64,000 nucleotides of DNA, taken from positions 1 through 64,000 of the forward strand of contig OZ316899.1 of the NCBI GenBank assembly GCA_973895155.1, written 5' to 3'. The notes beneath the pieces were generated by a model. The model was given only the letters and a program-made list of their open reading frames with translations. It was not told the DNA's origin and did not search any database. Below, in pieces: positions 2,069 through 54,300 of the stretch (positions within the stretch are counted from its first letter, which is position 1; each line of letters starts with the position of its first letter). Origin of the DNA: Marsupella aquatica. Lineage: Eukaryota; Plantae; Marchantiophyta. The position numbers and the translations under genes were made by a program.

Positions 2069-2076
2069 CTCCCAAC

Positions 2077-2107
<31 letters not shown>

Positions 2108-2200: not shown

Positions 2201-2231
<31 letters not shown>

Positions 2232-29519: not shown

Positions 29520-29690
29520 CTTTATTTTGAAATATATATCTGGCATGCTTTTCTGATTATTGTTATTTAATAGTTCCAGATAGTTTGGCCGGAGATATGT
29601 ATTTTGAAATATGTATCTGGCATACTTTTCTGGTTATTGTTATTTAATAGTTCTAGATAGTTTGACTGGAGATATGTATTTTGAAATAAA
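29520..29690. repeat. ~77-bp tandem duplication in the intron upstream of TET-like copy 2
   Basis: TATTTTGAAATAT(A/G)TATCTGGCAT...GGAGATATG twice, plus a partial third. Confidence 0.9.
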
Positions 29691-29729
29691 TATCTGTATA
29701 AATTAAAGTATGTTTTTGGAATTTTTCAG

Positions 29730-31172
29730 ATGGCAAAACGAAAGTTTTGGAAAGTGAACAAACAAATGAAGGAAGATGGCAAATATGAGTATGAGAAAAT
29801 GAAATTTGCAATGGACGTTTTCATTCAAATTTTTTCAGCGATCATGATATTGCATCCACGTTCACAAAAGTTTGCCATGTTATTTCTTCTTCAAGAAGAT
29901 AATATTTTTCAAGCATTTGTACAAAATGTATTGAATATTAAACATACTGTATCGAAAGCAATGATATATAATGCTTACTATAGATTTAAAGAAATTGGAC
30001 CACCAAAAACCTTTACTTCTTGCGCATGGGAGAATATCTGTGATATTCTTGATCATCATTATTCTTTAGATTCAGTACCCTATAGTATAAGAAAATACAT
30101 CCATTTTCTTAGGTCATCTACCTATATTGAAGAGTGTGTAAAAAGAGAAAAAAATATGCTAGAGAAAAAAGAAATGGTGTTTGAAAAAATTATTTCCCAA
30201 TTTTGGTGGGGAAATGTGAATCCAATGGAATTAGTGCAAGGATTTTGGGGAAGAGTTGATGATGAAGGTGAATGTTTTTATCGCTTAGAATTAGAAAAAA
30301 CATTACAAATACTTTCTAGAAGAAAAAACAAAGGGAAAGAAATTGAAATTGAAGAGGCACCTATATATAGGGAGCTTCCAATTTCTTATGTTGAAATCCA
30401 AAAAACAAAACAGGTTACTGAGATCTATGATAAAATCTCAAGTGAGCTAGTGGGTATCCATATTCGCCCTAAAGATGTTCATAAATCTTTTACTATATTG
30501 ATGCGAACTTATCTTAAAGATCTTTTTTGTGCTCATCCAAGTTCAAAAAGATCTAAAACTAGAGCATCCTATATGAGTGAAATGGTGGGGTTCGGTCCAT
30601 TTCACCATACATGGACACCTGGAAAAAATGTTACATCTTTCTACACTCATAGTAATAAGTTAGTAAAAGCTTCAAAACCTTTAAAAGATTTTGGTAGATT
30701 TATTGATCGATTTGCACATGGGGCTGTGGTAGAAATTTTAATGTCTATGTGGTTTAGATATTATCCTACGTTATTACATACTTTTCTTAGATGTTGTAAC
30801 CCTTACTTAGAAACTTCCCAATATATTAAGGAAGGTGTTGAGATACCATTTTTTGATAAGCACATGAAGAAGGGACCTCCTGCTTATCAACTATTCATTA
30901 CTAAAGATTATTGTTCACGTTTTCATGTGGACAATGATAGGACAGAGTGGACACTAGCATATACTAGTCACCCTGATGAACATATTTCACCAGTTGATTT
31001 TGTATTTGCTAAACATGGATTTATATTACCTTTGCATAATGGTGATTTATTTGCATTCAAAGGCAAACATCTCCATGGTATGGCTTTTAGAAAACCAACA
31101 GAAAATCCTGCCTATATTGCAGCTTTAGTTATGAATAGTGGCTTAGGAAAATTATTAAATAAAATAGAGTAA
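29730..31172 (+). CDS. TET/JBP-like 2OG-Fe(II) dioxygenase, copy 2 (480 aa, most divergent)
   Basis: Intact ORF; YQLFITKDYCSRFHVDND...DFVFAKHGFILPLHNGDLFAFKGKHLHG; SEMVGFGPF; ATG directly after TTTTTCAG. Confidence 0.75.
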   Translation: MAKRKFWKVNKQMKEDGKYEYEKMKFAMDVFIQIFSAIMILHPRSQKFAMLFLLQEDNIFQAFVQNVLNIKHTVSKAMIYNAYYRFKEIGPPKTFTSCAWENICDILDHHYSLDSVPYSIRKYIHFLRSSTYIEECVKREKNMLEKKEMVFEKIISQFWWGNVNPMELVQGFWGRVDDEGECFYRLELEKTLQILSRRKNKGKEIEIEEAPIYRELPISYVEIQKTKQVTEIYDKISSELVGIHIRPKDVHKSFTILMRTYLKDLFCAHPSSKRSKTRASYMSEMVGFGPFHHTWTPGKNVTSFYTHSNKLVKASKPLKDFGRFIDRFAHGAVVEILMSMWFRYYPTLLHTFLRCCNPYLETSQYIKEGVEIPFFDKHMKKGPPAYQLFITKDYCSRFHVDNDRTEWTLAYTSHPDEHISPVDFVFAKHGFILPLHNGDLFAFKGKHLHGMAFRKPTENPAYIAALVMNSGLGKLLNKIE

Positions 31173-32149
31173 TTAGATATGTTTCAGGTATCATGAAACA
31201 AACTTTAATGTATCTTTTTAGAAACAATTATGAAGTTTATTAACTATGTATTTAATATTTGGACCAATTTAGTTTAGGATTGTAATTGTAATATAAATAC
31301 TTATGTTTGACAAAATCTTTATGTATATTGACTTACTTTAGAAAATAATTTTCAGCTCTTATAGCTCTAGAAGGTAATAGGCCTAGGGTAGTGTAGGTAA
31401 AATCTATAAGGCAAAACTAACACACCCAAATAAATCAAAATTATCCCACCTTATGTAGATCATTTGCGTAGTCAAAGGCCTTTATTGGGTCAGCCTACTC
31501 AGGCACCAACTATATATGCAGCCCAAATGCCAGCTCAACAGTCCAAATAGGTTAATTGGCTAGTTAATGCTACAAACTTTCACATTAGAAATTGTCAGAA
31601 TTGCAAATCAAAGACAATGTCCAACGTCATGGTTGTAAACCAACGTTGTTTTTAGGCACAAAATAGGCATCAACTCTGCGCTGCCCTATCCTGTGCTTTA
31701 CTGCTCTCCATCCATGGCCGTTCTCAGTTGAAGAAGCATCGAGACGATCAACCCAGATGTTTAGAGAAAAAGGAGGCATACTCCGTACTATGATTACTGC
31801 TTCTATATTACCGGTTGACTACTGTCAATCCATATCTGATGCTACATGTTTTGCAGCACAAGAGCTCTCCTTAGGGTCACTGTTTGTTAGTGTCATCCAT
31901 GCCTCGCAGGTAGTAGATGTGCTGTGTGTTGATCTCCTGAACGGGGCGCACATTTGGCATAAGCTGCAGGAACATCACAAACTAAAAGTCCGTCATATCA
32001 TTTCGATTGCACCAATTTCATTTGATCAGGGTAAATTCTTCAATTTGATAACAGGCTCCATAACTACCAACCAGAAGCCAAGTGTCAATCTCTTCTTGTG
32101 AAAAACAAGTGAATGCTCACCTAAATGTACAGGCTCCCTAAATACCTTG

Positions 32150-35079: not shown

Positions 35080-35567
35080 AAACAATTGCTATGTTGAAAG
35101 GTCGTCTACAGCGAGGCATTGCTATAGACTCGTACACATATGTTAAAAGTTCTGCAAATGTGCTTGCAACAGAAAGACCTTTCAGGAGCCAAGCAAATTC
35201 ATGATTGCATCATCGAGAGTGGAATTCACGAAAATCCATATGTGGCAATCACGGTATATCAAATGCAGAGGTTTATCGGATGCACGTAGAGTTTTTGATC
35301 AAATTCAGAAGAAGAGTGTTATTACTTGGACCAGCATGATTGCGGGATATGCTAGGAGTGATCATGTTCAATCTGCACTCGACATTTTCAATCTAATGCG
35401 CCAAGAAGGCGTGAAGCCAAATGAGATCACGTATCTGAGCATCCTGAATGCATGGTCAAGCCCATTAGCTCTAACATGCGGAAAAGAAATTCATGAGCAT
35501 GTTCGACAGGTCGGCTTTGAATCATCCGTGCGTGTAGGATCTGCTCTCGTACTGATGTACGCTAAAT
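35080..35567 (+). pseudogene. PLS-class PPR N-terminal fragment, frameshifted and truncated at the duplication junction
   Basis: DSYTYV...; DARRVFDQIQKKSVITWTSMIAGYA...GVKPNEITYLSILNA...GKEIHEHV...VRVGSALVLMYAK followed by a stop at the junction. Confidence 0.9.
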
Positions 35568-38500
35568 AGTTTGCATTTTGACCCAAAGCTGCCCTGACGA
35601 GATGTCAAGGTCTGTCTGGTTTGAGAGTCGAATGACGGATTGTGAATGAATGAGTTGACAAAGATCCACAAAAGATTTTTGACCTGAAACGACTTCCCCA
35701 TCATGTGGGCCTTCCGAATCATAATGAAGTCCTTCCAAAATATCAAACACATTAGTCTTCAGGATGTCAAAGTGTTCCCTGAAGAGCTTCTCGGCTTCCT
35801 CTTCAAATTTAGTTGCTGCAAACTTCCGAGCGAGTTTGAGCATCTGCTCCTAATCGTCGGCAAAGCTCAGCCTCGCAAAACTCAGCTTCGATGATTAATT
35901 AGCATCTAGAACAAATTGGAAGGGATATCTAGTGACGGCCGATCGCGATGTAGCAGTGATGACAAAACAACGTTGTAGGTCCTGTTTGGAGGCCAATTCA
36001 ACGACAGTGGTTTGTTTCAGCCCATCAAAAGTGGAATAATGATCAGCGGAGGTCAACTATTTTTGTAAATGTGTAGCAGGTCCTAGTACAGAACCATCGT
36101 TTTGACTGGCACTCTGCCAGTGTGAGAATTGAATGATTGGCACGATGTCAGCTACGTAACACCAGGCCTTAATAGTATCGTCCCCCAAAATCTGGTACAC
36201 TGGAGCATTGTGTCCAAAGTGGTGGTCCATCCCGGCTTCACTTTCCCCTTAGCAATGAGGTAAAATTTGGTGTATAACAGCCCCTGCTTACAATGGAATG
36301 GCTGATGACGATTATCAAAAAGAGGGAGCCTCGGTACGTCACCTAAACATACCACGAATTCGTCCCATTTCGCATGATGGCATCTGATGGATCACCTCTG
36401 CCAATGCCTTTAAAATTCTCTCAGTTTGATTCCAGCATGGGCTCTGTCCCAATTCAAATGCTTGGCATGACCCAATTTACTAACGTTGCAGCTCACCAAT
36501 TGCTGGAAAAGGAAGGGGGCAGCGCTTCTGCATGTTTGTAGGATTTAATGGTTATGCGGACGGCAACCACGACTGAAGAATAATCACGGAATAGCTAGCT
36601 TCCTCCCTAGCTAGCTAGATATGGTGGCAGGAAAGCAATTCATTCATGATCCAGGCGCAACAGTGCACGAGAGAACGAGACTGACATCCCTAGCGAGCGG
36701 TGACTTCCTCCAATGCAGCAGCATGTACTGTAGGCAGAGCTCGACTCACTAGTTAACACTGCAATCAGTATGGGAATTGATGTGTGATCTTCCATAGCCA
36801 AGTAAGCAATGAGACCACACTGCTGTTGATGCTGCTGTGCTTGCTGTCTGAGGCGACGGCGGCTGATGATGCCGTTGCATGCTGCCTGATGAGGTCATAT
36901 ATTCAGAGATAGTATGTTTGCATGGCAGCTAGCTGCTGCTGCTGTATGTTCGGAGCACTATTCTGTAGTCAGACGACTGCTGCGCCTCTTGCGCTCTAGG
37001 GATTAACAGTGCTGTTGCTGCTCAGGTCTACTATGGGATGGAATCATTCTGTCTCACTCAGACCAACTACATCTGAGATTAAAATGGAAGGAAGAAGGAA
37101 TGAAGGTGCGCGGTGCATGCATGAGCCCCCAGGAAAAGAGAGAGAGACGAGAGAAGGAGAAACGGAATAGAGAGAGGAAGAGATCTACGGACAATACCGG
37201 GGGTTGGGAGATTGTCGTGTGTTTGCAACCTCCCCAAGTCTCAAACTAGCAGACTGACTCACATCTGCTATTCTCAGGACTGGTCTGGTCTGATGGTCTG
37301 GTCTGGTCTGGTCTGGTGGTCTGGTGTGGTCTGGTGTGGTCTGCTCGGGTCTGGTCTGATCGATGGGATCTCCCGCTCTCTTACACGCTCCCTTTTTCCC
37401 TCTGCTAGTCTATTCTAGAATACAGGTGAGGATTGGGAATGGAACACAGGTGTGTGAGTCATGCGGAAGTGAAGAGGATTCTCCGGTTTACTCCTATTAA
37501 ATGAGATGGGACTGGGCTATGGTGGGTTCTAGTGGCCTTCTTCAGTTGCGTCAACAGGCGACGGCAGGTAGAGTAGAGTTTCATGATCCCGATGAAACTT
37601 TCGCTTTGTCACTTGCCTGGTGGTGGACGGAGGGAGGGCTTTCATTATAAGATGGGACTTGTATCATGCGTATCATGCGCTGCTCTCCGCCCTCCCATCT
37701 CAGCTGCTGCCGAGTGCTTGTGAAGCATCACTGTACTGTTTTTAATATATTTCAGGCCCTAGCTTCATCATGAGTACTCTCTCCTGTGGACGGTGCTCCG
37801 AGTGGCTGCAGCATCTTCGTCCCCATTGTCCCCCATATTCGCGTAATTCTAGGGCTGTATTGTGATAACAGCAGCTTCGTTCTGGTGCTCTGCCAAGCAC
37901 AGCTCCTTGTTCCCAGAGCTACTGTCCAGAGTGCTAACTTACGTCGTGGCAGTCCTAGTGTGAATCAAGCTTGATCAGGCCCCAAGAAAGCTGACAGAGC
38001 GGCTACATACTACGGCTTGATTCCAAGCTGTGCAAATCTTGCACTTATCTGAGCATGCTTTGTCCCAGATGGGAAGTCTGACCTCTGGGTCCCGCCCCCT
38101 AGCATCTGCTCATCCCAGCTGTTTATCGAACTGTCCCCATTGCCCATTTGATCCGTAGGCTGTGTAGAGCTGTAGCCCCTTTTCCTCCTTGCCCCCGCAC
38201 TTCCGAATTGCAGCTTGAATGAATGTGCACTTTGTAGCCGACTGAGCAGTCAGGTGGATGAAATCAGCTTTAGTACGTATTATGTTAGTCTTTGTCTCCC
38301 TTTGGCCCAGCGTCCAAAGCTGCTGACATGGCTGTTCTAATCACATTGGCTTGCTACAACATTACTCCGACAAGTCTCAGTGACCCAACAGCATCGCGCG
38401 CGGTCCCTAACTACTCCGCCGAATTTTCCAAAGCTCAGCACAGTATTGACTTTACACGTGACCTCTTAAGCAAACCATTCATTCCTGTAGACTCAAATCC

Positions 38501-40430
38501 TGCTCCCTTTGGCCCAGTGTCCAAAGCTGCTGACATGGCTATTCTAATCACATTGGCTTGCTACAACATTACTTCGACAAGTCTCAGTGACCCAACAGCA
38601 TCGCGCGTGGTCCCTAACTACTCCGCCGAATTTTCCAAAGCTCAGCACAGTATTGACTTTACACGTGACCTCTTAAGCAAACCATTCATTCCTGTAGACT
38701 GAAGCAACCGATGCTCAGAGTCTCATCGCCTTCGCAGATCATTGGGGGGCAAGAGACCACGGGCAGCACTTGAGAGATAGAATGCATGTCGACGCAGGAG
38801 CTCAATCACCACTGAACAGCCCCGCCTGGCATCACCATTCTCTGGCTCGTGGGGTCCCGCCTTCATTTCTTCAGCGTTTTGCTTCTCGTTGGACTATCGC
38901 AGCTTCAGTTTTTCAATTGGGCTTGTTACCAGTCTTGTCGTCTTGAGCTTCATCGAGGAGTCTCTAACATGTGTACTTGTCACTCGTCTGGTTAGATCGA
39001 CTTTGTATCGACTGCTGCTGCCAACAGATCCTTGTGGTGAGTTCTCACTTCTCTATTTCGAATGTATCTTCCCTCCATATATAGTTAGATCTGACTGGTA
39101 ATTAGCTATTGTATCTCTCAATTATTTTGCACTTTATTAACGTACTCAAGGTGCAAACATGGGATCATTAATTTGGCACTGCGAATGTGTTGGAATATAT
39201 TGGGCAACAGACCACCGGCAGCACTTGAGAGATAGAATGCATGTCGTCGCAGGAGCTCAATCACCACTGAACAGCCCCACCTGGCATCACCATTCTCTGG
39301 CTCGTGGGGTCCCGCCTTCATTTCTTCATCGTTTTGCTTCTCGTTGGACTATTGCAGCTTCAATTTTTCAATTGGGCTTGTTACCAGTCTTGTCGTCTTG
39401 AGCTAGCTTCATCGAGGAGTCTCTAACATGTGTACTTGTCACTCGTCTGGTTAGATTGACTTTGTATCGACTGCTGCTGCCAACAGATCCTTGTGGTGAG
39501 TTCACCTTGAGATCATCAATGAGCACGAGAATACGATATTGATGAAAGCGAAGCACTCCTTCACGTTGGATGCATTCCTCCAGTACCTTCTCGACCAGGC
39601 TGTCAACATTGCTTACTTAAACAAGGTGAGACGAAACTAGATGCGTCAATTTTTCCATTTCTCATGTCTCGAGTAAGGCACGAATTAGAGTGGAGCCAAT
39701 CCAGTACTTCACGGTGAATTCTAGCACACTATTGTGGCTGCGGTAGTCGGCAGATCGGTGCAGATTGACTTGTGTGTTCTGACAAGTCAATCCCCCTCTG
39801 GTCTCTCGTCTCGCTTCTCCTCCTCGTCTCTCTTCTCCTCTTCGTCCTCTTTGTCGTCTTCATCGACCTTCGTGTCGTCGACTTCTTCCTTTTCCAGAGT
39901 TCCGCAATTCTCTCGAGTCAGAGCGTCTCCGCGAGTGCTTTTTTACTGCGGAGTGAATTACCTTACCTTGACGCCCCCATGGGGCGCGTTGACTGCTGGC
40001 CCAAGATTAGTAGGCTGGACCGCTGGAAGTAGTGGTGCTCTGATTATTAGCGTCCGTCAAGTTCAGCACGGCAACTTGGCCCTGGAGTCCCGGACACATT
40101 AGGGGCGCTGCCCTTTGCACAAGGGCCTGATTTGTCCTTAGTTGAACTACAGTTAATTAAGGAGAATTACACCAACATGTTTTTAACTAAATGGCCACTA
40201 GCCATATCAGTGTATTTTATAAGGTTTTTACTTTTTCGCCAGTGACGAATGTACGATGCTAGAAATTAATATTTCTTATTTGATTATTTTACTGACCATC
40301 TATAAAGCTTTTATTCTATAAAGCTGTGAAGAGGGTCGATATATGGCGGATCTTTAGAGGTACGGATGGCTCATAGGCAGTTTTGTGACTTTCGTGGTAG
40401 GAAGCTGCCTTCAATCTGTCCCAAGATAAG
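35566..40430. repeat. Segmental duplication copy B, with insertions (36098-37880, 39785-40300) and internal 207-bp and ~300-bp tandem duplications
   Basis: Collinear with 13047-15463; 38296-38700 is a 207-bp unit twice; 38750-39050 is repeated at 39210-39500. Confidence 0.93.
37280..37358. repeat. Imperfect (GGTCT)n microsatellite
   Basis: Seen directly. Confidence 0.9.
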
Positions 40431-40760
40431 GTTGGGAAATTGGCATAGAGGGTGACCTTGCCATGTATGTTGTATGAGATTGTGGCCATTTCAGCCAATT
40501 CTTTTGATGCTTCAACCGAGTTGTTGTTGCACCTCACTGGTCACGTCAAGTGAACTACTGTCCTACTGCGTTTATGTCCACTAAGGCCCTTGGTGGCTGG
40601 TCGAGTAGAACTCCCACACCAATTGCATCCCCATCCTTCGTGTTGCTCAAAAGTTGGCGAGAGGACTTGGAAAGTTCCCTACCCATCGAGTCAGCACTCT
40701 AACGTCTTCTGGGGAAAGGTTGGGGAAAGATGCTTCCGAGATAAAAATCTCCGAGGCAGT

Positions 40761-40775: not shown

Positions 40776-41328
40776 ATCCTAAAATCTCCTCCGTGTTTCC
40801 TTGTAGTTCTCCATTTTCTTCTCCATCTGTCATTTTTAACTTATTAAATTTAGTTAACTGAGTTCTCAAATTATCTAGCTACATCTTTGGATACTATATG
40901 CTTCAACATCCCAAGACATTGCACCCCTTGTTTACTCACAGTAGTCAACAAGTTTGGTTACATGCATGAATGGTCTTAGTGTACACATATATGACATTGA
41001 AATCTACAATTTATTATGCAACCCTGAGGATTATCATTGCAATGATAATAATTCTTTTGAATCCCATGGGGAAACCTTTGTATCTTATCTCATTCATATC
41101 CTTGTATGAAATGGTGTTGCAGAGTTCTTTTGGCTTTTCATGTGAACACAGAATTGAGGTGTAGGGTGAGCAATTGTAGTAGTAGGTCAGATCTCTGCGT
41201 GGGCTCACCAAACTGAAGGTAGGGCTGGTGTCCATCCTATACACAGTGACACTTCCAATTCATTCCAATTACAGCAAATGTCTTTCCAGTATGTCAACTA
41301 AACTGCAATGTCTTATTGATTTGTAGGC

Positions 41329-42009
41329 ATGGCACGTAACAAGCAGAAGGCCAAGAAGCCTAAGACAGAGGTGAGCAACACGCAGGTGTTTGGGACAGAT
41401 TGTGAAAAGTTCTCCAAGAGTCAAGTGTACCAGAAGGCAGCTCATTGTTGTGCCATTTGTGATGATGGTGGGGGCTTGGTTATCTGTGATGGCCCATGCA
41501 TGAGACATTTCCACCTAAACCCTGAGTCTAACCTTGCCGTAGAGAACAACTGTCCAGGGGTGGGCCTCCCCTCTGCACACGAGGGAGCCTGGATGTGCAC
41601 TGATTGTGTAGAGAAGCAAGCTAAGTGTGCACAGTGTGGGAAGTTGGGGTCTTATGAGACCTTTGCTGATGCTGGACCAGTTGTTAGGAAATGCCCTGAC
41701 AAATTTTGCATGAGATTTTATTGTTTGTCATGTTTGCCTACTCATGCCACAGTTTGCCCAGTTCATACATGCAAGGCATGTGGTGAGCATGATGATGAGT
41801 ATTGGACAGACATAGTCCATTGTGTTAGATGTCCCACAATGTGGCATTTTCATTGCTTGAAGGACCTTCAAGCAGAAGGCTATGCTTGTGATAGAGAAAT
41901 CTATGATCACTCTGCACATGGCGTTGATCGATGGATATTTTATTGTCATCGCCATCCAATTGATCCTACTTTGCGCATTCCTATCAGAGATCACATATCT
42001 TGGCTTTGA
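41329..42009 (+). CDS. Stand-alone EDM2-type triple PHD-finger protein (226 aa)
   Basis: CAICDDGGGLVICDGPCMRHFH...C...WMCTDC...CAQCGKLGS...CPVHTCKAC...CVRCPTMWHFHCL...IFYCHRHPIDPTLRIPIRDHI follows the EDM2 PHD cluster as I recall it (CAICDNGG...CEGSCLRSFH...CPLHKC...CRRCPKSYH...IYCQEHEIDEELLTPVRDHV); acceptor TTGTAG sits 2 nt before the ATG. Confidence 0.85.
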   Translation: MARNKQKAKKPKTEVSNTQVFGTDCEKFSKSQVYQKAAHCCAICDDGGGLVICDGPCMRHFHLNPESNLAVENNCPGVGLPSAHEGAWMCTDCVEKQAKCAQCGKLGSYETFADAGPVVRKCPDKFCMRFYCLSCLPTHATVCPVHTCKACGEHDDEYWTDIVHCVRCPTMWHFHCLKDLQAEGYACDREIYDHSAHGVDRWIFYCHRHPIDPTLRIPIRDHISWL

Positions 42010-42668
42010 AGCTGAACAAAGTGGGTTGGCATAGTGCCCCTAATGTGGATGTATTGTTTGGAGATTGCAGAGAGTTCATTTTTGATGAGAAGGGCCATTG
42101 AGATATTAGGCAACAGTTATCTTGTGCTTACATGTGGCTAGGTACATGCCACTAAAAACTTATCTTAAGCCTTCCATGATCTCTTCAGACTGAGCAATCA
42201 TTTTGAAAATTAATAAAATTATAAACTTATTATTATGTGTCTATGAAGTATTTAAGGCTTTTTTAACGGATGACAAATTCTTAATTTGTATAAGTTCTTG
42301 ATTCTGATTCAATGGGTAGTCCTTCATTTATAACATACTTTATATGTGTTATCACAAAACAATACTCAAGACACTATCTCCTTTTTGTATTCTGTGCAGT
42401 ATCATTCATGTCAACATTTGTACAATATTGAAGCCAGACCCAAGAAAAGAAGTGACAACTACTTTGGACAAATCAGTACCTTTGGGAAGGTGAGTACCTA
42501 AACATCAAATTTATTCCTTTCTGTCCTCCTAAATCTTAAATGGTTTGTAAATCCAATGACAAAAGTTACAACTTACGGCATTTCGGTACTCAGATCTTAA
42601 ATGGTTCGTGTACTATTTGACCGGAATTGTAATTTTTACTAAATAAATTATTTGTTCTTACATGGCAG

Positions 42669-44033
42669 ATGGGAAAAAGAAAGCGTAATACTTTGAGAAA
42701 AAAAGAATTGGGGGAAGATTTTTCTGTGGATGTATTTGCTACAGTGTGGGAAGACCTTAAAAAATTAGATACCATAAAATTGAAGTTTGCACTTCATTGG
42801 ATTCTATGTCACGACAACATTCTTGAACTTTTTGTTAAAAAAGTTCTTAAACTAGAGTCTTCAAGATTTTCAAGAACACTATTCTTGAATGGGTATCAAA
42901 ATTGTAGAAGCCATATCATTCAGATCTTTCCTCCTGAGGTGTTCATTGAAATTGATGACATCTTTCTTCATCATGGTTTCAGACTAAAATTACCTCAACC
43001 TTTGAAAAAATCAATTTCCATGTTTTCTAATCTTAACATTAGAAAGCTTAAACTTTTTCAAAAAGAAAGAGATAATCTTTGTAGAAGTGGAGGAACTTAT
43101 GCCAAAGTTGAAGTAGACGTTCAACGTATTTCCTCTTCAAAACTAAAAACACTTACTGGTGTAATTTTAGGTGATTGGGATCAAACTACAACAACATTTA
43201 CCTCTGATCCAAACTTTAGTTTCTTAAAATTTCCATCAGACCTTATTATCATAGAAGAAAAGAAAGGGTTTACTTATCTTTTTGATAGGTCTGGAGTCAA
43301 CCCATATCTGATAGCAATGATATTCCATCAAGATATCCTATCACCTGATTCAATGGTCTTCATTCGAAGATTATTAGAACAATTACATGCTGCCCATCAT
43401 GTTATCCAAAGAGGGAAAGGAAAAAGATCATGGGAAAGTAAGATGACGGGGTTTGGTCCTTTTCATAATCCTTACAAAAAAGATCAAAGTTGTGTATCTT
43501 TTTATACCCATGAACAAAAGATAAAGACATTCTTCAATCAAGATTGTCCTGATGCAGCCAATTTTGAAGACATGGTAGATAAATATTCTCATCGAGAGTT
43601 AATCGATATTATTCTTGGACTGTACATGTGGTTATGTCCACAAATGTTAGACAGTTTTTTAGATTATTCTCATCCTTACTTACATTCAAATGATTATAAG
43701 ATGAACATATTTGATAAAGCACTAAAATGTAAAGGTCCTAGTGCTTATCAATTATATATTAGTAAAGATTATTGTGTAGAAACTCACGCTGATCATGATA
43801 CAGCAGAATTTACTTTATGTTATGTTAGTCATCCTAATGCCAAAATTTCTCCTGGAAATTTTGTTATTCCAGAGTATGGAATATTATTACCTATTAGAGA
43901 TGGTAATTTATTTTTATTTCGTAGTGACGTTGTCCATGGCACAGGATATAGAATTCCAACATCAAATCCTATATACGTAGGAGCTGTTACCATAAACAAA
44001 AAATTAGATAGACTTTTACGAAAAAAACATTAA
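42669..44033 (+). CDS. TET/JBP-like 2OG-Fe(II) dioxygenase, copy 3 (454 aa), preceded by a 90-nt exon (42400-42489) and intron (42490-42668)
   Basis: YQLYISKDYCVETHADHD...NFVIPEYGILLPIRDGNLFLFRSDVVHGT; donor AAG|GTGAGT and acceptor GGCAG|ATG. Confidence 0.78.
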   Translation: MGKRKRNTLRKKELGEDFSVDVFATVWEDLKKLDTIKLKFALHWILCHDNILELFVKKVLKLESSRFSRTLFLNGYQNCRSHIIQIFPPEVFIEIDDIFLHHGFRLKLPQPLKKSISMFSNLNIRKLKLFQKERDNLCRSGGTYAKVEVDVQRISSSKLKTLTGVILGDWDQTTTTFTSDPNFSFLKFPSDLIIIEEKKGFTYLFDRSGVNPYLIAMIFHQDILSPDSMVFIRRLLEQLHAAHHVIQRGKGKRSWESKMTGFGPFHNPYKKDQSCVSFYTHEQKIKTFFNQDCPDAANFEDMVDKYSHRELIDIILGLYMWLCPQMLDSFLDYSHPYLHSNDYKMNIFDKALKCKGPSAYQLYISKDYCVETHADHDTAEFTLCYVSHPNAKISPGNFVIPEYGILLPIRDGNLFLFRSDVVHGTGYRIPTSNPIYVGAVTINKKLDRLLRKKH

Positions 44034-45889
44034 TAAAAAAGTAGATATATTATTTGTATTTATAATTATTTTTTATTACTCTGGACAAGTTAAAGTCTAG
44101 ATTCTTTAATTTGAAAAATATAGGATCATAGGAAAATGTGTAAGAGTATGAATCATGGCATCTTATGCTAGGAGTGGAAAAACCAGAGGGTTAAGAGGAG
44201 ATGATGGTCTAACAAAGAAAGGCTTCTTCAAGGGGAGGAGGTGAAAAGGACCTAGTAGTGAAAGTGAATCTCAATGTCAAGTGGATAGTTTTCCTCAACA
44301 TCTCCCTTAAGTTCTTACAAAACCATGAAAGGCCTATAAATACATCATCCATTTTGACACTCTCATCCACTATTAGGTGATTTATCTTGGAGAATAGAAT
44401 GAGAGTGGTATTCTTGACCAAGTATTCATCATGTTGGACCCTAGATATACCATTCATTTCATTTCATGACAATGAGCTTTAAAACCAATTTTCTAGAGGC
44501 AACTCCAAAGCTAGTTAGGACCTGATAGGCACAGTCCCAATCCTAATATTTCTTCAAACCAAGTAAATGGTTTTTTTTCCTTCAAAAAAACCATAGAAAC
44601 CCATGGGAAGGGGGGCCCAACAGGGCAACAAAAACCGAAGTAGCAAAATGCAAACTTGGTGAGACCAAAGGAGTCCAAAGGTGCAAGGGCTCAAAAGGAG
44701 GGAACAAGGTAGGAAAAAACACTAGTCAAAGAAAAATCCTGTAAGTTATGACTGTTTCAACTAGAAAGCCACGCATCCGAACGAGTAATCCACCTAAGAC
44801 ATTCCTTACTCACCAACTCTTTGACTCTCAATAATCTAGTATGTTTTCTACTGGGACCCGAGGCCTCATAAAGGCCATGCAAGGCATCCAATATTTCTGA
44901 AAGGAGGAGATTCAAGTTGAACCTTCTACTTGTCATATAGCAATAAGTATCAAAAGTGTAATTTCTCACTTAAAACCAAGATTCTGATCCCTTAAAGAAC
45001 ATATTTTGGTATGAATTGACTAACTTTCATCATTCTGAGTGATATAGAACTCATAGCTCTACACTTTCTTTACTTCTCAACAAAATAAAGTAAACAAAAC
45101 ATAAAAATAAACTAACTTCAGATTTACAGACTACAAAGGAAATGATTCCAGTTTTGGAGACTCTAGTAAATTATTGCCACACCTTCAGAAAGGACTTGGT
45201 CTCAATATAAGCACGCCTAAAGTCTCTCAACTCATCAATCTTTCTACTGAAGATACAAAATTGAACAGAGATGAAGTTCTGAATCTGATAAACAAAGCAG
45301 CTTTCTGGTTGCAAATGTAATGATATGCCTTAAAATGCCATCAACACGGTTTAACATCAGCATCGCACAATTCAGTCAAACTCTAAGTCATATTCCGGAA
45401 CAAAGCAACGGTACTGAAAGCTCTGAGAATCAAATTTATTTCTCATTCATCAACAACTACTCTTGAATTGGCTAGCGAATCTTGACTCTACAAGCAAGCC
45501 TAGCAGTGAATTCAATACGAGTCTTAGAAGTCTGTAACTAAATTCAATCACCACAGGAATTCATGAGTTTCAATCACAACTTCAAACAAATGTTGCTTCA
45601 CTTCCATACAATGCACTCTCAACATGCCTTGTTACAATGGAAGGAGGAGGGACTATTCAGAAGATCCAATTCTGAATAGAGTGTTGTCTCTAACTCTCTC
45701 TCTCCCTCTCTGGTTCAAATGAGCATCCTACTCTGTCTTATAAGTGCTAAGGTCCTAAAATGAAGGAAATATGAAAAGCTATACCTGTTGAACTTGAACT
45801 AAGTATGAGGAAAGTACAGCATAAGTACTTAGAGGTCGGAAAATACTACTATATGGGTAATCTATTTTGAAAGTTAAATCTAAGTATCG

Positions 45890-46100
45890 GAAAATGAGGG
45901 ACGCTTCTAAAAGCGTCGGGTGTGGATGGACGCTTCTGAGCGTCGAGTCAGAGTGGACACTTTTAGAGTGGACGCAGAAGTACTCGAGAATAGTCGACGC
46001 TGCTGAAAGCATCGGGAGTGAATCATTGGAGAAGAGCGGACGTTTCTGGAAGCGTCGGTCAAAACATGGTCGATGAGGGTAGACGTTTCTGTTTAGCGTC
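45890..46100. repeat. Cluster of short GACGCT-N-AGCGTC inverted-repeat motifs (second cluster at 49157-49245)
   Basis: About five motifs here and three near 49.2 kb, some imperfect. Confidence 0.75.
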
Positions 46101-46329
46101 CAGAATAGAACAAATGTTTGAAAAATGTCAAAAATAAACTATCTTCCAAGAGGAATGGTAGAGATCATCATTCCACATAGCCCTCCATTGAAATTTTGCC
46201 GTGTCCACACAAGACAACCACGCTTTGATTAAAGACCAGTGCTGGATTCTTCATCAAAAATCTTCTGGCTAGGGAATCCAAGTGGTACTCAAGACCATTG
46301 ATGGAATATGGTTGTCATTGGGGTTCACA

Positions 46330-46622
46330 ACATAAAAATTGAGGTCATAAAATTCTTCTCCAATTTGTAATGGCACTTGTTTTACTCTTCCCCAAAGTAA
46401 AATTAATCATCCATCGATTGAGATTTGAGCACATATGGGCTGAACGTGTTGGCGAACTAATTGATGAAACAGTCTGTGGGACAGTAAATTTATTCCAGAG
46501 CCTGGGTCAATAATAAAGTGTTGCATAGTGTGTCCTTCCAATTTAATCTCCCCTTCAAGAGAATACTGAAATACGCAAGAGAGAGAATCACAGCAATCCA
46601 TAGTAGCTTTTACGGTCCACAT
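46330..46622 (-). mobile_element. Retroviral-type aspartic protease relic (Ty3/Gypsy)
   Basis: FIIDPGSGINLLS motif, then LNFYVV...MVLSTTWI in another frame. Confidence 0.6.
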
Positions 46623-46731
46623 GATGACTCAAACAGAATAAGTGTTGCTCAGTGCTTCAATCAGGTCCATTCATACTCCAGGGAATAAACGCCCCTTCAA
46701 ATCTTATATACATGAAGACGTTACAAATCTG

Positions 46732-49140
46732 CTATCTACTCAACAACCCTTGAGTGACAACGTCCGGCCACGAAGGAGGAGTAGGTAACCTTACTAGTCT
46801 CCTAAGTGACTTATACCCTTGAGCAGAAGAGTTCATAGCCTTATTCCGTATCAACTGTTCTCGTAGCTTAACAAGCTCTTTCTCATACTTATGCGGAACA
46901 GCATACCCTTCATGGCAGACCCAAACAGAGTATTGGTATGGCCAAGGAAATTCTGGAGTTATTGGCGGAAAAGGAGCTTCAGCACGTCGGAGGACATATA
47001 CCCAACACCAAATTTCATATTCCGAAAATTTATATCTTCTACCCTTATCAATGGGAGGAATAGCCTTACCCGGCTTATAAGTGGGAATCAACATTCGAAT
47101 ACTCGGTAGATACGTACCAGGTAAAATCTGTTGTTGTTGATGTATACTCTCCATTTCCAGATGTCGGAAAGCTATCCGAAAATCATTCTTCTCCCACTTA
47201 TGAATTGAAGCAAGGTTAGGTATAGGAATTAGGGATGGTAGTACCACTGTGTGCCCAAGTTTGGGAGGTACTCTGATAATACGAGGATCTTCGTCTTCCT
47301 CTCCATCGCTTGGAGCTCCTTTCCAACGAAAAATAATGTCTGGGTTTGAAGAAGGTATCACCGACTCCTTAGTAGGCCAACGTGATAGTACAACAGGAGA
47401 TGAAGATGCAGGAGGTGGAGAAGAATTCCCCATTGTCGTGTTGATGGGCTTCAGCTGCTCAAAATCTGGTGAATTTGATTCATGAAAGATCTGTTGATTT
47501 CTTACACGACGCAACCTTTTCCCAGGTCTTCGAGTATATGTCACTTGAAATTGCTCGGTAATAAGTGAACTCTCATCTCCAAGTGATATCCGAGTACCCT
47601 TATCTCTGCTTGAATCCAGTAAGATAGAAGCTGATGCAGAGCTAAATGCCAAATCAGGTGTTCCAGACAGAGGTATGGGTGGAGATACACTCTTGGTCTC
47701 AGGTAGCCCTAAATTGCTTGAAGGTCCGAGAGATGGAGTGGTCTGTAGACTGTGTTGAGACTCAAGTAATCTCTCTTCTGGAAGGTAAGCTGGAGAAACC
47801 CAATCAACAGATGGGTGTGGAGGAGGCCCTTTTCTCGCCAATGCTTCTGCTAACTCCTCAGACATAATCAGAGCAACTGTTATCCTGGTTTCGGGGGTCG
47901 GCCACATAGGAAATGGCATGACAAAATTAGGTGAAGTTGGTTGTCCAGCTACTCCTTCTACATCTACTATTTCGTCCTCTGAATCAGCCTTAAACAACTT
48001 TACAAGCTCTGGGCATAATACCGCCGGAGGTTCCATTGATTGTTGTACAAGAGGAACCACATCTAGGTTTGGGGAGGGACTACGAGAATCTTCCGAATTA
48101 TACTCCTGTAAAGCTTTTAAAGCATTATTACTCACTTCCATGGGTGGTGAAGCAGGGTTCTGTGAAGTTTTATCATACCCATCCGCTGCAGTAGTATATT
48201 GTTGAGGAGGTTCTCCTGGTAAGCTTTCTTCATCCACATCCATCCTGTCTTCGTCATTCGCTCTGAAAGCAAAATTGTCCTGATCAAGATCTTGATCCTC
48301 TGATGGGTGGGAAAGAATTGGCTCGTCTCTCCCGCCAACTGGTTCTCTTGTCTCTTTCAGTCTCCGAACTTCATTTACCAGCTCAGATTCTTCGCAAGTG
48401 AGTAGTTCGCATAACGCCACCAGTGTTGAACTGGATCGGACTTCTCGTACTTCCGGCAACTCATTTGCTTCACAGGTAGATGCGCTCCAATGGGTACGAT
48501 AGAAAACTTTCTCTGAAAGGAGCAGACATTTATGCTTGTGATAAATGTGAGCTAGATAGGGAGTCAAGTTGGTAAATCTCAACTTTCCAGCTTGCAACCT
48601 GCTACGAAAGTTCTTTACCTGGGTATGAATTACCCTATATAAGATCTTCGTCCAATTGATGGTCTGCTTCTGTTCTAATGAAGAGATAACGGTGGCAGCG
48701 AAAGAAAGAGTAATACGTGTCTGACTCTCTGGATAGAAAATTGGTGACAGAAATCGAAAAAGATGCTGCAAAGAGGTAACTAAACAGTCCGTGGTTACCC
48801 AACCATTTCGCCTCTTAAAGGATTCAGGAGCAAAGAAAGACTCTATATAAGCTCGGGGCTCTCCATCAATCCTCTGCAAATCCTCGCCCGTTGTCGGCGT
48901 CGAGTAGACTCCCGCTATGAGCGCTTCAGTCCAAACACTTGGACGCGAGCGGACACCGATTCCTTCCTCAGCGTCCCACACACCTTGGTCGATGAGGCTG
49001 AACTCGCACATCCTCCAAGGGAAACGAAGTAATTTCTTCAAGCCCATCAATGCAAGATTTGTCCTCAATTGTCGGCGGTCCACCATATTCGATGGGATAA
49101 TTGCGAGTATTGGTCGCGTCGTAAGTTTGGACTCCACCAT
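46732..49140 (-). CDS. Extra ORF downstream of integrase in a Ty3/Gypsy non-chromovirus element (~800 aa; plant-transposon-type N-terminal domain plus P/S-rich region)
   Basis: Intact frame, likely ATG at 49140; GLKKLLRFPW...WTEALIAGVY...GWVTTDC...FLSPIFYP...INWTKIL; same strand as and directly 3' of the integrase. Confidence 0.7.
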   Translation of the reverse strand: MVESKLTTRPILAIIPSNMVDRRQLRTNLALMGLKKLLRFPWRMCEFSLIDQGVWDAEEGIGVRSRPSVWTEALIAGVYSTPTTGEDLQRIDGEPRAYIESFFAPESFKRRNGWVTTDCLVTSLQHLFRFLSPIFYPESQTRITLSFAATVISSLEQKQTINWTKILYRVIHTQVKNFRSRLQAGKLRFTNLTPYLAHIYHKHKCLLLSEKVFYRTHWSASTCEANELPEVREVRSSSTLVALCELLTCEESELVNEVRRLKETREPVGGRDEPILSHPSEDQDLDQDNFAFRANDEDRMDVDEESLPGEPPQQYTTAADGYDKTSQNPASPPMEVSNNALKALQEYNSEDSRSPSPNLDVVPLVQQSMEPPAVLCPELVKLFKADSEDEIVDVEGVAGQPTSPNFVMPFPMWPTPETRITVALIMSEELAEALARKGPPPHPSVDWVSPAYLPEERLLESQHSLQTTPSLGPSSNLGLPETKSVSPPIPLSGTPDLAFSSASASILLDSSRDKGTRISLGDESSLITEQFQVTYTRRPGKRLRRVRNQQIFHESNSPDFEQLKPINTTMGNSSPPPASSSPVVLSRWPTKESVIPSSNPDIIFRWKGAPSDGEEDEDPRIIRVPPKLGHTVVLPSLIPIPNLASIHKWEKNDFRIAFRHLEMESIHQQQQILPGTYLPSIRMLIPTYKPGKAIPPIDKGRRYKFSEYEIWCWVYVLRRAEAPFPPITPEFPWPYQYSVWVCHEGYAVPHKYEKELVKLREQLIRNKAMNSSAQGYKSLRRLVRLPTPPSWPDVVTQGLLSR

Positions 49141-49359
49141 CGCGTCAATCGTAAAGGACGCTTCTCTTGCCGTTCCTAGAAGTGGACGCTTCTTGCAGCG
49201 TCCCGTCAAGACTAAGTTTTAGGGTGGACGCTTCTCTCAGCGTCCAGTGCAAAAACTAAAATTCCGAACACTTGTGAAGGGGGAGGGAATGCTGATTCTA
49301 ATAAAGTACAAACTACCTACCGCCCTCCACTGAAACTATGACCTGTCCCAGGTGAAACA

Positions 49360-50700
49360 CTAAATAGGAGACTCATGATATCGCTTAACCCGGAATCCAT
49401 TGATTCGGGTGTCAAGTGGGTGACCATCTAAGGTAGTCAAGGAAACCGAACCGTTATCCCAGATTTGGGTAACTCGATAAGGACCAATCCAATGGGTATG
49501 GAGTTTCCCAGGAAATAACATATAACAGGAATCAAAGACTAATGCTAAATCACCAACATCTAAATTCACGACTCGCAGCTTTTGATCATAAACAAGCTTA
49601 CGCTTGTTCTGAATTGTAGCTGTATGGTCTAACGCTAAAAGTCTAACTTCTTCTAATTTGACAATATCATAAAACCTATGTGGGAGACTAGCCGTTGGAG
49701 AGAGACGGTTGGATACCAAGAGTCGTTCTGTCGGGAAGGAGAATTCAATAGGAATAATACTGTCCAGGCCATAAGTCGGGTAGAAGGGAGTGTGAAGGGT
49801 TGTAATTTTCTCGGCAGTACGGTAAGCCCATAATGCAGAATGTAACTTCACATCCCAGTCTGTCTTGTGAGACTCTACTATCTTATTCAGGATCTTGCCC
49901 ACAATGCCATTAGCTCTTTCCGTTAAGCCATTAGCTCTGGGGTTGTAAGGAGTAGTTTTGCGATGCTTGATAAGATATGTGTTAGTAATTAACTCAATAG
50001 TTGAGTTAAGAAAATGCAAACCCCTATCGCTTACCAACTCCAAAGGACACCCGAACCGAGTAATAATGTGCTCAAAGAGAAATGCAGCAGTTGTTGTAGC
50101 ATCATTCTTGCGAGTGGCTTTAGCCTCCACCCATTTGGTGGCATAATCAGTGGCCAAAATAATGTATTTACTTCGGCTTTTTCAAGCTGCTGGTGAAATT
50201 GGGCCAATAAAATCAATACCCCATTTCTCAAATGGTGTCAAAGGCAGGATGGGCGTAAGAGGCCATTTGGAACTAGCAGTGGGTTTCCCTATTCTTTGAC
50301 AGGGGTCACACGTCTTAATAAAGTTGTAAGTATCTCTATGCATGGTAGGCCACCAGTACCCATCATCCAAAATTTTCTTTACAGTAGTATTGACAGCATA
50401 ATGGCCACGTGTTTCTCCAGAATGTAAAGCTTCAATTACTTGTGGGAGTTCCCTGTTCTCCAGACATCATCGCATCTTCTGATCAGGACCTTCTTTAAAC
50501 AAAGTGCCCTGGAGGATAGTATAAGGTCCCACCTTATGTGCAAAAACAGCTCGTTCTTCCGCATTAAGGCCTTCAGGAAAACTACCATGAATCAACATGT
50601 GCACAATATCAAAATACCGTGAAGACTCTCCTTCAATGTGCCACAAATGCTCATCTGGGAATTCATCAGAAAGATTATGCTGATTCTCTGGCCCGGGTAA
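49360..50700 (-). mobile_element. Ty3/Gypsy (Athila/Tat-related) pol remnant: H2C2 zinc finger plus integrase core, two in-frame stops, 5'-truncated
   Basis: LHSGETRGHY...GYWWPTMHRD...CDPCQR, FEKWGIDFIGP, ATDYATKWVEA, VSDRGLHF, TPYNPRANGLTER, GKLHTHWIGPY; no RT or RNase H upstream. Confidence 0.95.
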
Positions 50701-51308
50701 GATGCACGGGCATTGGGCAAGGTGAATCTTGTCAGAAGTTCACATTTGTTAGACTAGAACCATTGGGATGCACAAGCTTTGAGGTCTCCTAAGCAATCAC
50801 CAGTGCCTTTGATTTTGTCCCTAAACTAAGCAAAGTTCTCTTGTAGCATGTTAAGGGGAGCCCTCTACCTCTAAACCATGAGATCCTAAACTAACTTCAC
50901 TTGAGACATCTCTAGGTACGTAAATAGACAAACACTCATCAGGGAGGTCCAATTCTCAATTTCAGAGACAGTAGACATAGAAGTAGGCCCTATGGAGATA
51001 GATGAAATCAATAGAACTGAGAAACTAGTGGGGAGCAGGAAAACTACTCATACACAAATAGTCGCTTCCAAGTTGAAATTCCAAGTTTTAGAATAGAAAG
51101 AAAAGTGACTCTTCTATGGTAATAATGGATAGAAACCAAACAGAGATAAATAATAAGAAAAAAAACAACTAATGCAAAGATAAATTGAATTTAGGGTGAA
51201 ATGAATACAATGGGCATCATCATATATACGGGCATATATATCTCACAGCTTTATTCATTAGAATCCCCTGGGAACTCCACATGTACAGATTTTGACTTTG
51301 ATTCTTAT

Positions 51309-54300
51309 CTAACTGTAATTGTAATCAGTAAACATATCAAAGTGAATTCGCTCCGAGGTCGTGTTGTCCCTTTGATCAAGTGCAGCATATCGAGCTTCCC
51401 GGTCTTCATCTACTTGCTCTTGTCTTGCATGACACTGAGCCCATCTTCTCTTACTCATGTCATTCCTAAATGCCATTTGTCTCTCCTCTCTCTGTCCGGG
51501 GGTTTCCTCGACCATAATACCTTCCTCATTGTACAGTTTATACACACCAGGTCCTCGCTTGTCTGAAAGTTGTAATTCATCATCAATGTCCCCTTCTTCT
51601 AGGGATTGAGTAATGAGGTAGGACTTACTGACACCTGCAGCACTTCCCCATCTTAACATAGGCAGCTCACCTTTCAGAAACCCAGCTGCCACCATCAAAT
51701 TGTACATCCTAGCAGCCGAAGGCCCTGCTCGACTAAATAATTTCCACAAATCTAGACCACCATCCTCCATCTCTCCAGTAACTGAGATGCGGACATTTGC
51801 TTTCTTGCCTGACCTTCCCACAACTTCGTATAATGTTCTTGTGAAGCAGTACCATTTGAAATACCGAGGATCCTTGAGCATGTTGTTGTATGTTTCAATG
51901 TGATGGACACTCCACAACCATTTCTCGATCTGCTCCAAAAAACTTATCTGCTGATTTTTCCTGTAACTAGGTGTCATTAGTATCCGGATACTTGGATGGT
52001 GCTGCCAGATAGAAAAGTAAGTGGGGGTCGCTTCGTACATAACAGCTATTCCATCCTGTCCTTCTATTTGATCTCCCTCTTGCACTTGGTAATCCTGTGG
52101 TGGATCATGATATCCCCAAAGCAAAGCGGGACCAAAGTACTTCCCAATATTATAATTATACACACCTAGCTCTAACCATGTAATAACTACTTCCGTGGGA
52201 GTCACTGCTTCCCAATAACTACTTTTCTCCAAGTGAACCAAAGATACATCTTCGGGGTTAAAGGGGTATACATCATTTCTAAAGTAACCCCCTTGACGAG
52301 CCACCACCGCTGGGTCACGCCTCAATTCATAAAAGAACCTCATTGCCAAGTGACTAAGCTCAGGTGCAATTGGTAGATTGAAACTCATCCAATCATCAGA
52401 TACTACTATGTCAGAGGTGAAAAATGGGTTGAATGCGACAGTAACCCCGTCCCTCTCCATCTTCTTCCACTGGGCAGCCTCCAAAAATGTGATGAGTCGG
52501 GGAAGTGTATACTTCCCACAATTGATCCGTACTTCCCGAGCAGCCCACGTTTTCAATATCAAGGGCAACAACTCATATAACTTACTATAAACATCTAGAC
52601 AACATTTTCTCTGGTTATCCCTATGTGCTAATCCCTCATGAACCATATTAGCCATTGCTTTAAGTGCAATAAAAGTTTCATTTTGAGGATGCTCCCTTTC
52701 TAATTCCGACAGCATGAATTGAGCTATTCGACTGTTAGCCCGACCTCCTAATCTATAAGACAAATCCTCAGGTAATTGTACATTAATATGTCCAGACCAC
52801 TCAAAAAAAGGCAGCATGAATCTAATCCTTATGGGGACTTCATCCCAAATCTGATCCCAATCTCCAGGTCTGATGTCCCTTTTATTTACCTCTGCACTAG
52901 CCAAAATTATCCGAAGGGTTTCTAGTCCGAGGGCTTCATCAACCTCAATCGGATGCCAACCATCACTCTGCTCTCCAGACATTGTGGTCCAGTGGTTGAT
53001 GCTGATCTTTTTCAGGATCTCAACTCGTTGTTTGTTTATTGGGTCTTTCAAAGCCCCATCCAATAACTTGGTGGCTTTCTTTGCTTCATCTCTCAACTCT
53101 TGCACTCGAAGTTCCCAAGCATCATAAGCATGTCGTGGTATCCGAACATCCTTAGAATTACATTGCACCAACTCTCGCTGGGCTATTTCACCCAACCACT
53201 TCTTTCTCTCCTTCTCTCTCTGCTTGGCACTTAATTCCAATGTTCGGATATACTCCACCCTCTCCAGGTTTTGCTGCTCCAACTTTTGTAACGCTTCAAA
53301 AGTCAGTGTGAGCTGCTGGGTAGTTTCTTTTAGCGACTTCTCTATCACTGTTATCATCTGAGAGGTATGACCTGCACATTGAGAGTGAGTATGGCGCACT
53401 TTAGCAAATTCATCTTCTAATTGCAGCCGCTTCTCCTTTTCTTCTTCATATTGGCCTGAAGCCTCCTTGCTCGCTTTTTGGGCCTCCTTCAATTGTGCAT
53501 TCAACTCTCTGCCCTCTTCTTCAAAGGCAGCTACATACCGACTCAATTCTTCTGCCTTTGTGGTATTCTGAGCGTGTTGCTTCTCTGCTTCCTTCCGGAC
53601 AGTTGTCACTTCCTCTATCAGCAAAGTAATCCTTGCCTCTTTTTCTTGGGACTTCATCTCCTGCTCATGCAACATTTGTTCTCGTATCTCCACCTTCTCA
53701 TTGAGGAGTCTCACCATCTCCTTGTTTTCCTTCAGCAAACTCTCCAACTTCTCAATCCTCTCTTGGAGCTTAAGGTTGGTGTTGGCACTTATGAACAGAT
53801 CTTCTTCCTGCTGCTTTGCCTTTTCTCTCTCTCTTACCCCAGTTTCTGCTTCGAGTGCACAAATGTGGGCCAACCCGCACACTTCCTTGGCTTGATGTAA
53901 CCACAAACGCTTGTCACTTCCTACAGGGAAGGGTCGATTAATAAACTTCATCCTCTGCTCAAAGGAGGTGAGTTCAGACAGAACAACATTTGATAACAAC
54001 TCTGTCAACACTGGTTGATGGTATACATAATCAGATTGGGCAGTGGATGTCATAGCTTCTTCTTCCTCTTCGACCGGGATTATCACTCTCCTTTTCTTTC
54101 TTTTCAAGGACTTAACACACGCATTCCCCTTTATCCTCAATGTGCGTAATCCTTGTGCGCCTTCTTCATCAGAATTGTCCACTTCATCTGCACTGCTTGA
54201 GACCAGGCCCGAGACCAGGGATCCATTTGGGGCATAGAGTCTCGGATTATCTTCTTCCCCATCCTCGCTCTCCGACTCCTCCTTTTCTTCTTCCTCCTGG

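Follow-up and report, generated by a model that had tools for sequence, protein, structure and literature searches.

A stand-alone EDM2-type triple-PHD gene, probably carried by CACTA transposons, beside a TET-like gene in liverwort subtelomeric DNA

Introduction

Transposon-encoded manipulators of host chromatin are few and informative, and those known include VANC, Spm TnpA, and the chromodomain integrases. VANC of the VANDAL (Mutator-like) transposons of Arabidopsis is encoded by the element and counteracts epigenetic silencing of its own family. En/Spm, a CACTA transposon, derives several proteins from a single transcript through alternative splicing; when the element is methylated, its accessory protein TnpA promotes demethylation and reactivation. 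The integrases of chromovirus Ty3/Gypsy elements bear a chromodomain, an element-encoded histone-mark reader that forms one protein with the integrase and steers integration. Here, we analyze a 64,000-nucleotide stretch of DNA from the liverwort Marsupella aquatica (assembly GCA_973895155.1, contig OZ316899.1, positions 1 to 64,000; the window), in which a stand-alone triple-PHD gene related to the plant protein EDM2 lies upstream of a TET-like gene. At transposons, EDM2 affects both histone H3 lysine 9 dimethylation (H3K9me2) and CHG methylation, and modified histone is bound in vitro by its PHD repeat (PMC3632883). A sequence-only reading of the window had proposed that the two genes form an anti-silencing cassette, in which a captured heterochromatin reader works with an enzyme that modifies 5-methylcytosine (5mC).

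The product of the PHD open reading frame (ORF) has in common with EDM2 of seed plants an identically ordered run of three PHD-type zinc fingers and a "PIRDHI" extension, at 33% identity over ∼190 amino acids (aa); it differs in that its family is multicopy, resides in CACTA transposons, and makes up a long-branched clade of its own, with proteins of ∼220 aa. A point of likeness to En/Spm is that relatives of the ORF are followed downstream by Transposase_21 (TnpD-like) genes with Transpos_assoc, DUF4218, and DUF4216 domains. In contrast to En/Spm, the window has no transposase match and CACTA termini were not found in it; we are aware of no resemblance of TnpA to PHD fingers. The likeness to VANC is one of concept only, that of a transposon-encoded accessory protein whose anti-silencing role is, in the present case, putative; VANC belongs to an unrelated transposon superfamily and is not a PHD protein. 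With the chromodomain integrases the putative likeness is that the transposon encodes a reader of histone marks for its own use, although the PHD protein stands by itself as a small product of a DNA transposon. Multicopy TET/JBP-like dioxygenase genes in transposon-rich DNA also recall the basidiomycete TET/JBP genes linked to Kyakuja-Dileera-Zisupton (KDZ) transposons, but no KDZ transposase was seen in the window, and the host is a land plant.

Results and Discussion

The window contains one copy of the PHD gene, an intact ORF of 226 aa on the plus strand (positions 41329 to 42009) that starts with ATG in the ORF listing. The NSD-type PHD models of Pfam fall on it in the expected order (PHD-1st_NSD at aa 39 to 93, PHD_NSD at aa 96 to 140, and PHDvar_NSD at aa 148 to 179), with scores of 23.5, 22.1, and 20.4 bits that are all below the gathering thresholds of 27, 27, and 23.9. 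Among PDB entries, NSD2 matches the ORF through its PHD region (E = 6.3e-5), and BLASTP aligns its residues 41 to 225 with residues 240 to 437 of ENHANCED DOWNY MILDEW 2 (P0021, 1,241 aa) at 33% identity (E = 5e-31). The C-terminal extension specific to EDM2 (ID..L.TP.RDHI), including "PIRDHI," is present as IDPTLRIPIRDHISW, aligned to IDEELGTPIRDHIRF of EDM2, and an extension of this type also follows the PHD module in an EDM2-like protein encoded on a metagenome contig (L009). The zinc-ligand Cys and His residues are invariant across 13 members in an alignment of the PHD ORF and its family, and the stop codon that follows "DHISWL" is kept in diverged family members.

Because the ORF stops right after the PHD module and its "PIRDHI" tail, the rest of EDM2, namely, the N-terminal RFD-like region and the C-terminal methyltransferase-like domain, is absent from it. 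The sequence-only reading had described an intact 226-aa ORF made up almost solely of the EDM2 triple-PHD cluster, devoid of the methyltransferase-like domain, and located about 660 bp upstream of a TET-like gene on the same strand. The ORF listing, the order of the Pfam models, the EDM2 alignment with its limits at aa 240 and 437, and a measured distance of 659 nucleotides (nt) to TET-like copy 3 (T3; positions 42669 to 44033, plus strand) bear this description out. Judged by its sequence, the ORF is a module relative of EDM2 and not an EDM2 orthologue. Contig L009 itself carries, at positions 325 to 4212, an uninterrupted EDM2-like ORF of 1,295 aa with the RFD-like region and the triple PHD; this ORF has no introns and probably derives from a transcript.

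An exhaustive profile-free search recovered 258 relatives of the PHD ORF at E ≤ 1e-3, and a look-up of its exact protein sequence returned no record. The top matches are short proteins of 166 to 245 aa with 41 to 58% identity; the matches further down are longer and are either EDM2-like proteins or triple-PHD proteins of bryophytes. For the PHD module, the best full-length relatives are liverwort and moss proteins (Calypogeia, Riccia, Marchantia, Ceratodon, and Sphagnum). In a maximum-likelihood tree, nine short PHD proteins fall on one side of a branch of length 1.66 with support of 100/100; within them the PHD ORF clusters with P0001 to P0003, and the sister group consists of members whose contigs carry transposase. 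The tree and the protein lengths place the ORF among stand-alone PHD proteins of ∼220 aa that are a clade of their own. The closest copy outside the window (L003) is 79% identical to the ORF at the amino acid level, and the ratio of nonsynonymous to synonymous substitution rates (dN/dS) between the two is 0.23 at a dS of 0.49; against more distant members the proportions of nonsynonymous and synonymous differences are 0.35 to 0.39 and ∼0.8, the latter being saturated. The PHD family is under purifying selection. Given the dN/dS of 0.23 against its closest relative, the ORF is not a dead fragment of EDM2 that drifts neutrally with a dN/dS near 1.

The genomic context of these relatives was read from five outside contexts, which comprise every outside contig long enough to display a neighbor of the PHD gene. 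In all five, the neighbor is a CACTA transposase (Transposase_21/Transpos_assoc), a gene with a BRCT domain, or both. The most complete order is seen on the 13-kb contig L004, on which the PHD gene is followed by a BRCT gene (E = 6.7e-9), by Transposase_21 (E = 3.9e-41) with Transpos_assoc, and by DUF4218 and DUF4216. On L001 the order is PHD, BRCT, one more ORF (190 aa, with a weak F-box-like match), and the N terminus of a transposase; the PHD gene precedes a transposase on L005/L006, Transpos_assoc on L013, and a BRCT-like gene on L002. Judged by their domains, the neighboring proteins are the protein set of CACTA/En-Spm elements. The BRCT gene is often a second accessory gene between the PHD gene and the transposase (L004:3587-4402, L001:2983-3948, and L002:1322-1891), so that such elements encode two chromatin or DNA-damage-type modules. 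The TET-like gene occurs in none of the five contexts.

We regard it as probable that the PHD ORF of the window is a selected CACTA accessory gene, a captured EDM2-type reader, and that it persists here in an element fragment devoid of transposase, next to a TET/JBP-like gene that was dispersed independently. Under this reading, an old family of stand-alone EDM2/NSD-type triple-PHD genes would occupy the first accessory position in CACTA (En/Spm-type, Transposase_21) transposons of bryophyte-like plant genomes and move with them, in the gene order PHD, sometimes BRCT, and then transposase. Of one such element, only about 1 kb would survive in the window, comprising the PHD gene and its short flanks but not a transposase. 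The encoded protein would bind histone H3 tails, as the EDM2 PHD module does, and may serve its own transposon family, either by targeting or by interfering with silencing.

We found no description of a CACTA-borne EDM2-PHD family in the literature, and the family seems to be undescribed in what can be searched. A family of DNA transposons that had captured the EDM2 histone-reading module would be a new example of a transposon-encoded chromatin manipulator. EDM2 itself regulates heterochromatic transposons, and the captured module is kept under purifying selection across deeply diverged copies; the CACTA-borne family would offer a natural means of finding out what is read by the PHD module of EDM2. 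This family is a more solid novelty than the proposed cassette.

Two other views of the PHD ORF concern its present status. The first, that it is an inert relic, intact only through recent copying from an active CACTA element and not expressed, we consider improbable. In its favor, there is no transposase in cis, and among the sequencing runs matched, whose type is not established, none was shown to be RNA holding the ORF. Base composition also agrees with it. The ratio of observed to expected CpG is 0.22 in the PHD ORF, 0.27 in the spacer that follows it, and 0.38 in T3 (0.36 to 0.48 across all TET-like copies, which are thus all depleted), compared with 0.66 in a leucine-rich repeat (LRR) receptor kinase gene of the window. 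Long-term CG methylation leaves this pattern, and the depletion therefore suggests a methylation history for the PHD and T3 loci; it misfits loci that stayed unmethylated, and the present methylation state is not readable from it. On the other side, the frame runs to full length and retains every zinc ligand as well as the conserved C terminus, and dN/dS at the level of the family is well below 1, although this constraint may act on master copies rather than on this copy. The second view takes the ORF for a gene domesticated by the host, whose product, a stand-alone EDM2-like reader, regulates the chromatin of the subtelomere; it would account for the purifying selection, the intact frame, and the subtelomeric location. 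It appears very improbable, since the sequence has many diverged copies and very high depth, its relatives stand consistently in a CACTA transposase context, and it is depleted in CpG, unlike the host LRR kinase gene.

The downstream partner, T3, encodes 454 aa, of which the N-terminal half is helical, and is a probable TET/JBP-like 2-oxoglutarate (2OG)- and Fe(II)-dependent dioxygenase. It is one of three intact TET-like ORFs in the window, all on the plus strand, which are accompanied by one degraded fragment. T1 (positions 16168 to 17559, with its ATG at 16183) and T2 (positions 29730 to 31172) are 49% and 28% identical to T3 at the amino acid level; the fragment T4 (positions 63284 to 63735, plus strand) is interrupted by stops and frameshifts and is the closest DNA relative of the 5′ part of T3 (71 to 87% identity). 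Among T1 to T3, conservation is confined to the ORF itself. T4 is cut off near position 63735 by a tandem repeat whose units contain GAGGGTACTCTTATC and which runs to the window edge at 64000.

An HxD...H iron-binding triad (H373, D375, and H423) is invariant in four diverged members, and the spacing of 48 residues between D375 and H423 fits a compact beta-helix. R428, 5 residues past H423, and Y436 are also invariant; the position expected for the canonical 2OG-binding Arg on the last strand appears to hold Tyr436, a difference from TET/JBP proteins. Full-length TET-like proteins had no match in Pfam, Tet_JBP (PF12851) included; the best match, below threshold, was that of the C-terminal part of T2 to PF20515 (Tet-like), with an E value of 0.061 and 13.8 bits against a cutoff of 27. 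Profile searches of PDB sequences with alignments of the TET-like proteins returned nothing relevant and provided no solved TET with which the residues could be aligned. By language-model features, 84 of 100 named neighbors belong to the Tet_JBP set and 9 to the PF20515 set, and the nearest clusters carry one or the other of these families. The AlphaFold2 model of the full-length protein was unusable (pLDDT of 41.6). As regards the double-stranded beta-helix fold of 2OG-Fe(II) dioxygenases, a model of T3 aa 183 to 454 was still of low confidence (pLDDT of 48.2), yet with it all 50 of the PDB matches listed by Foldseek were 2OG oxygenases, and those spanning most of the domain were the solved relatives CMD1 (probability 1.0; TM score by query, 0.41 to 0.45), CcTet, and NgTet1; VIA-align of the same low-confidence model to generic 2OG oxygenases gave Z scores of 9 to 10. 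We conclude that the ORF is quite probably TET/JBP-like. Its product would be a separate, element-borne or selfish Fe/2OG dioxygenase, probably acting on a modified base.

A single outside homologue of the TET-like protein (P0005, 37% identity) was found among 5.8 billion proteins, and none was found in metagenome and viral contigs. The contig of P0005 (L007) has no PHD in the 533 nt upstream; since this is shorter than the 659-nt gap in the window, the absence is not decisive. Our literature search returned nothing on point for TET/JBP in bryophytes, but its wording probably never matched "TET/JBP." A retrogene origin of the TET-like genes was considered and set aside, as intron-like GT...AG segments before the ATG are kept and no poly(A) tail is present.

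The boundaries of the two genes bear directly on how they came to be adjacent. Pairwise DNA homology to L003 delimits a PHD-bearing repeat unit at approximately positions 41230 to 42240 on the plus strand. The first ∼230 nt of the spacer (positions 42010 to 42396, plus strand) are accordingly 3′ flank of the PHD gene, and the homology between T3 and T4 begins at position 42397, upstream of which the DNA of T4 is unrelated. Because homology to L003 ends near 42240 and homology to T4 starts at 42397, two repeat units must meet between these positions. Only T3 among the four TET-like copies of the window has a PHD gene upstream; T1, T2, and T4 have none. GC content is 0.46 in the PHD ORF and 0.32 in T3. 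Depth, taken as word depth summed over the contigs assembled from four sequencing runs on three organisms, is ∼20 to 240 times higher over positions 41410 to 42053 than over the spacer and the TET ORF, with high-depth loose ends at ∼41430 and at 42016 to 42018; contig depth is not a clean copy number, and the run type is not established. Many diverged contigs cover the PHD segment, which therefore belongs to a large family. As a PHD remnant of ∼1 kb here abuts a separately dispersed TET/JBP-like unit, local juxtaposition, not a conserved two-gene system, is most likely the source of the adjacency. The remnant would have come to lie against the AT-rich TET/JBP-like unit in a transposon-rich subtelomere, and duplication or descent would then have spread the juxtaposition to a few copies.

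Several observations weigh against the reading that we favor. The first concern CACTA structure. In the window, neither CACTA terminal repeats nor transposase remnants were found near the PHD ORF: Transposase_21 had no match in the window at E = 1e-3, positions 44034 to 46731 gave no transposase remnant at E = 5, and no convincing terminal inverted repeats with a 3-bp target duplication were found around 40 to 47 kb. A 15-nt inverted pair at 40095 and 42033 begins with CACAT, but its flanks are unequal (GGA and GAT), and pairs of such length occur 28 times in 14 kb. The label "CACTA fragment" for the PHD unit thus rests on family context and not on local structure. The high depth of the PHD segment may also partly reflect expression. 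Contigs of a second organism (X3) tile the spacer between the PHD and TET-like genes, and one contig of a third (X6) joins TET-like positions 43416 to 43794 to the PHD 3′ end at 41962 to 42086, so that PHD and TET-like sequences are linked in more than one genome. Finally, acceptor-like sites stand immediately 5′ of both ATGs, TGTAG|GC ATG for PHD and GGCAG|ATG for T3, and such sites make it possible that one leader serves the expression of both genes, as in En/Spm.

A motif just 3′ of the PHD stop codon (positions 42033 to 42047) reads AGTGCCCCTAATGTGG in the window and GCACAGTGCACCTGATGTGG in loose ends from three organisms, with a similar sequence in L003. It is kept among copies and has an imperfect inverted copy at positions 40095 to 40109.

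The linkage and the splice-like sites lend themselves to a rival explanation, in which the two genes form one functional unit of a CACTA-derived nonautonomous element. A common leader would be spliced alternatively to the PHD exon or, via a 90-nt exon, to the TET exon, and the reader would bring or accompany the dioxygenase to the element's own heterochromatin, counteracting silencing. The genes' common strand and the 659-nt distance suit this arrangement, as does the purifying selection on both ORFs. The position of the second gene is also variable in related CACTA elements, in which BRCT may be present or absent. A GTGAG donor at 41371, just past PHD codon 14, is in phase 0 and is kept in L003; because of this phase, a splice from the leader to TET would stay in frame. 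The candidate exon (positions 42400 to 42489, plus strand), predicted from a preceding CAG acceptor and a following GTGAGT donor, is open in frame with the TET ATG, and the candidate intron after it (positions 42490 to 42668, plus strand; GTGAGT...CAG) ends directly before that ATG. T2 is arranged alike, with a GTGAGT donor at 29352 and a CAG acceptor at 29729 directly before its ATG. However, the upstream exon of T2 is not open, and the T4 segment homologous to the 90-nt exon carries a stop and indels. We estimate the probability that the in-frame arrangement arose by chance at 5 to 10%, and no GT..AG joints were seen over the region in the contigs, although the runs look like DNA. From these sites, the lead toward coexpression is a weak one.

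Against a single functional unit stand, in addition, the lack of a TET-like gene in the outside PHD contexts, the three window copies of the TET-like gene that have no PHD upstream, the differences in GC content and depth, and the failure to find termini enclosing both genes. We consider this explanation unlikely. More specifically, that a CACTA-derived sublineage expresses an EDM2-type H3-tail reader and a TET/JBP-like dioxygenase from one leader, as a self-encoded reader-plus-eraser module against 5mC silencing, we hold to be distinctly unlikely. If true, it would matter more than the PHD family, as a reader-eraser pair in a land plant that would keep the element, or its subtelomeric neighborhood, free of 5mC-based silencing. 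The adjacency is probably not unique to the window, given the related-organism contigs that cover the spacer or join the genes, but duplication or common descent is enough to explain its sharing at this level of similarity. Of the cassette put forward in the sequence-only reading, therefore, one part stands, an EDM2-type module on its own, associated with transposons and under purifying selection; the other, PHD plus TET as a functional unit, is not supported, in view of the outside contexts, the TET copies without PHD, and the differing GC content, depth, and boundaries. The cassette is a minority reading on present evidence, and cooperation between the two proteins is possible but is not indicated by their linkage. 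Juxtaposition of a CACTA-derived PHD fragment with a separate TET-like unit is the account that we prefer.

The setting of both genes is subtelomeric: positions 1 to 2800 of the window consist of ∼2.8 kb of degenerate CCCTAAA, the plant-type telomere repeat, and the whole window can therefore be placed near a chromosome end. Fragments of the LRR receptor kinase gene lie at 8.4 to 11.5 kb. Together with the liverwort and moss relatives of the PHD module, these features suggest a land-plant subtelomere, probably that of a bryophyte. Upstream of the PHD-T3 pair is a young repeat block (positions 35566 to 40440, plus strand) that is 93 to 96% identical to positions 13047 to 15471, which lie upstream of T1. 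The block has the same orientation at both sites, ending 712 nt before the T1 ATG (16183) and 889 nt before the PHD ATG, and the copy at PHD-T3 has two extra insertions (36105 to 37864 and 39785 to 40313). We considered whether this shared block makes T1 and PHD-T3 one type of element and rejected the idea, since the block is 93 to 96% identical and the TET ORFs are only 64% identical. An ORF of 122 aa at positions 35201 to 35569, resembling a fragment of a pentatricopeptide-repeat gene, ends exactly at the start of the block.

Downstream of T3, the minus strand carries three large ORFs of 825, 265, and 1,245 aa (positions 46732 to 55046); the 265-aa ORF has a weak match to an integrase core (E = 1.3e-6), and the other two are without any Pfam match. 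The TET-like ORFs lie in AT-rich islands (15500 to 17500, 29000 to 31500, and 42000 to 46000) with a GC content of 0.24 to 0.38, compared with 0.43 to 0.50 in the surrounding DNA.

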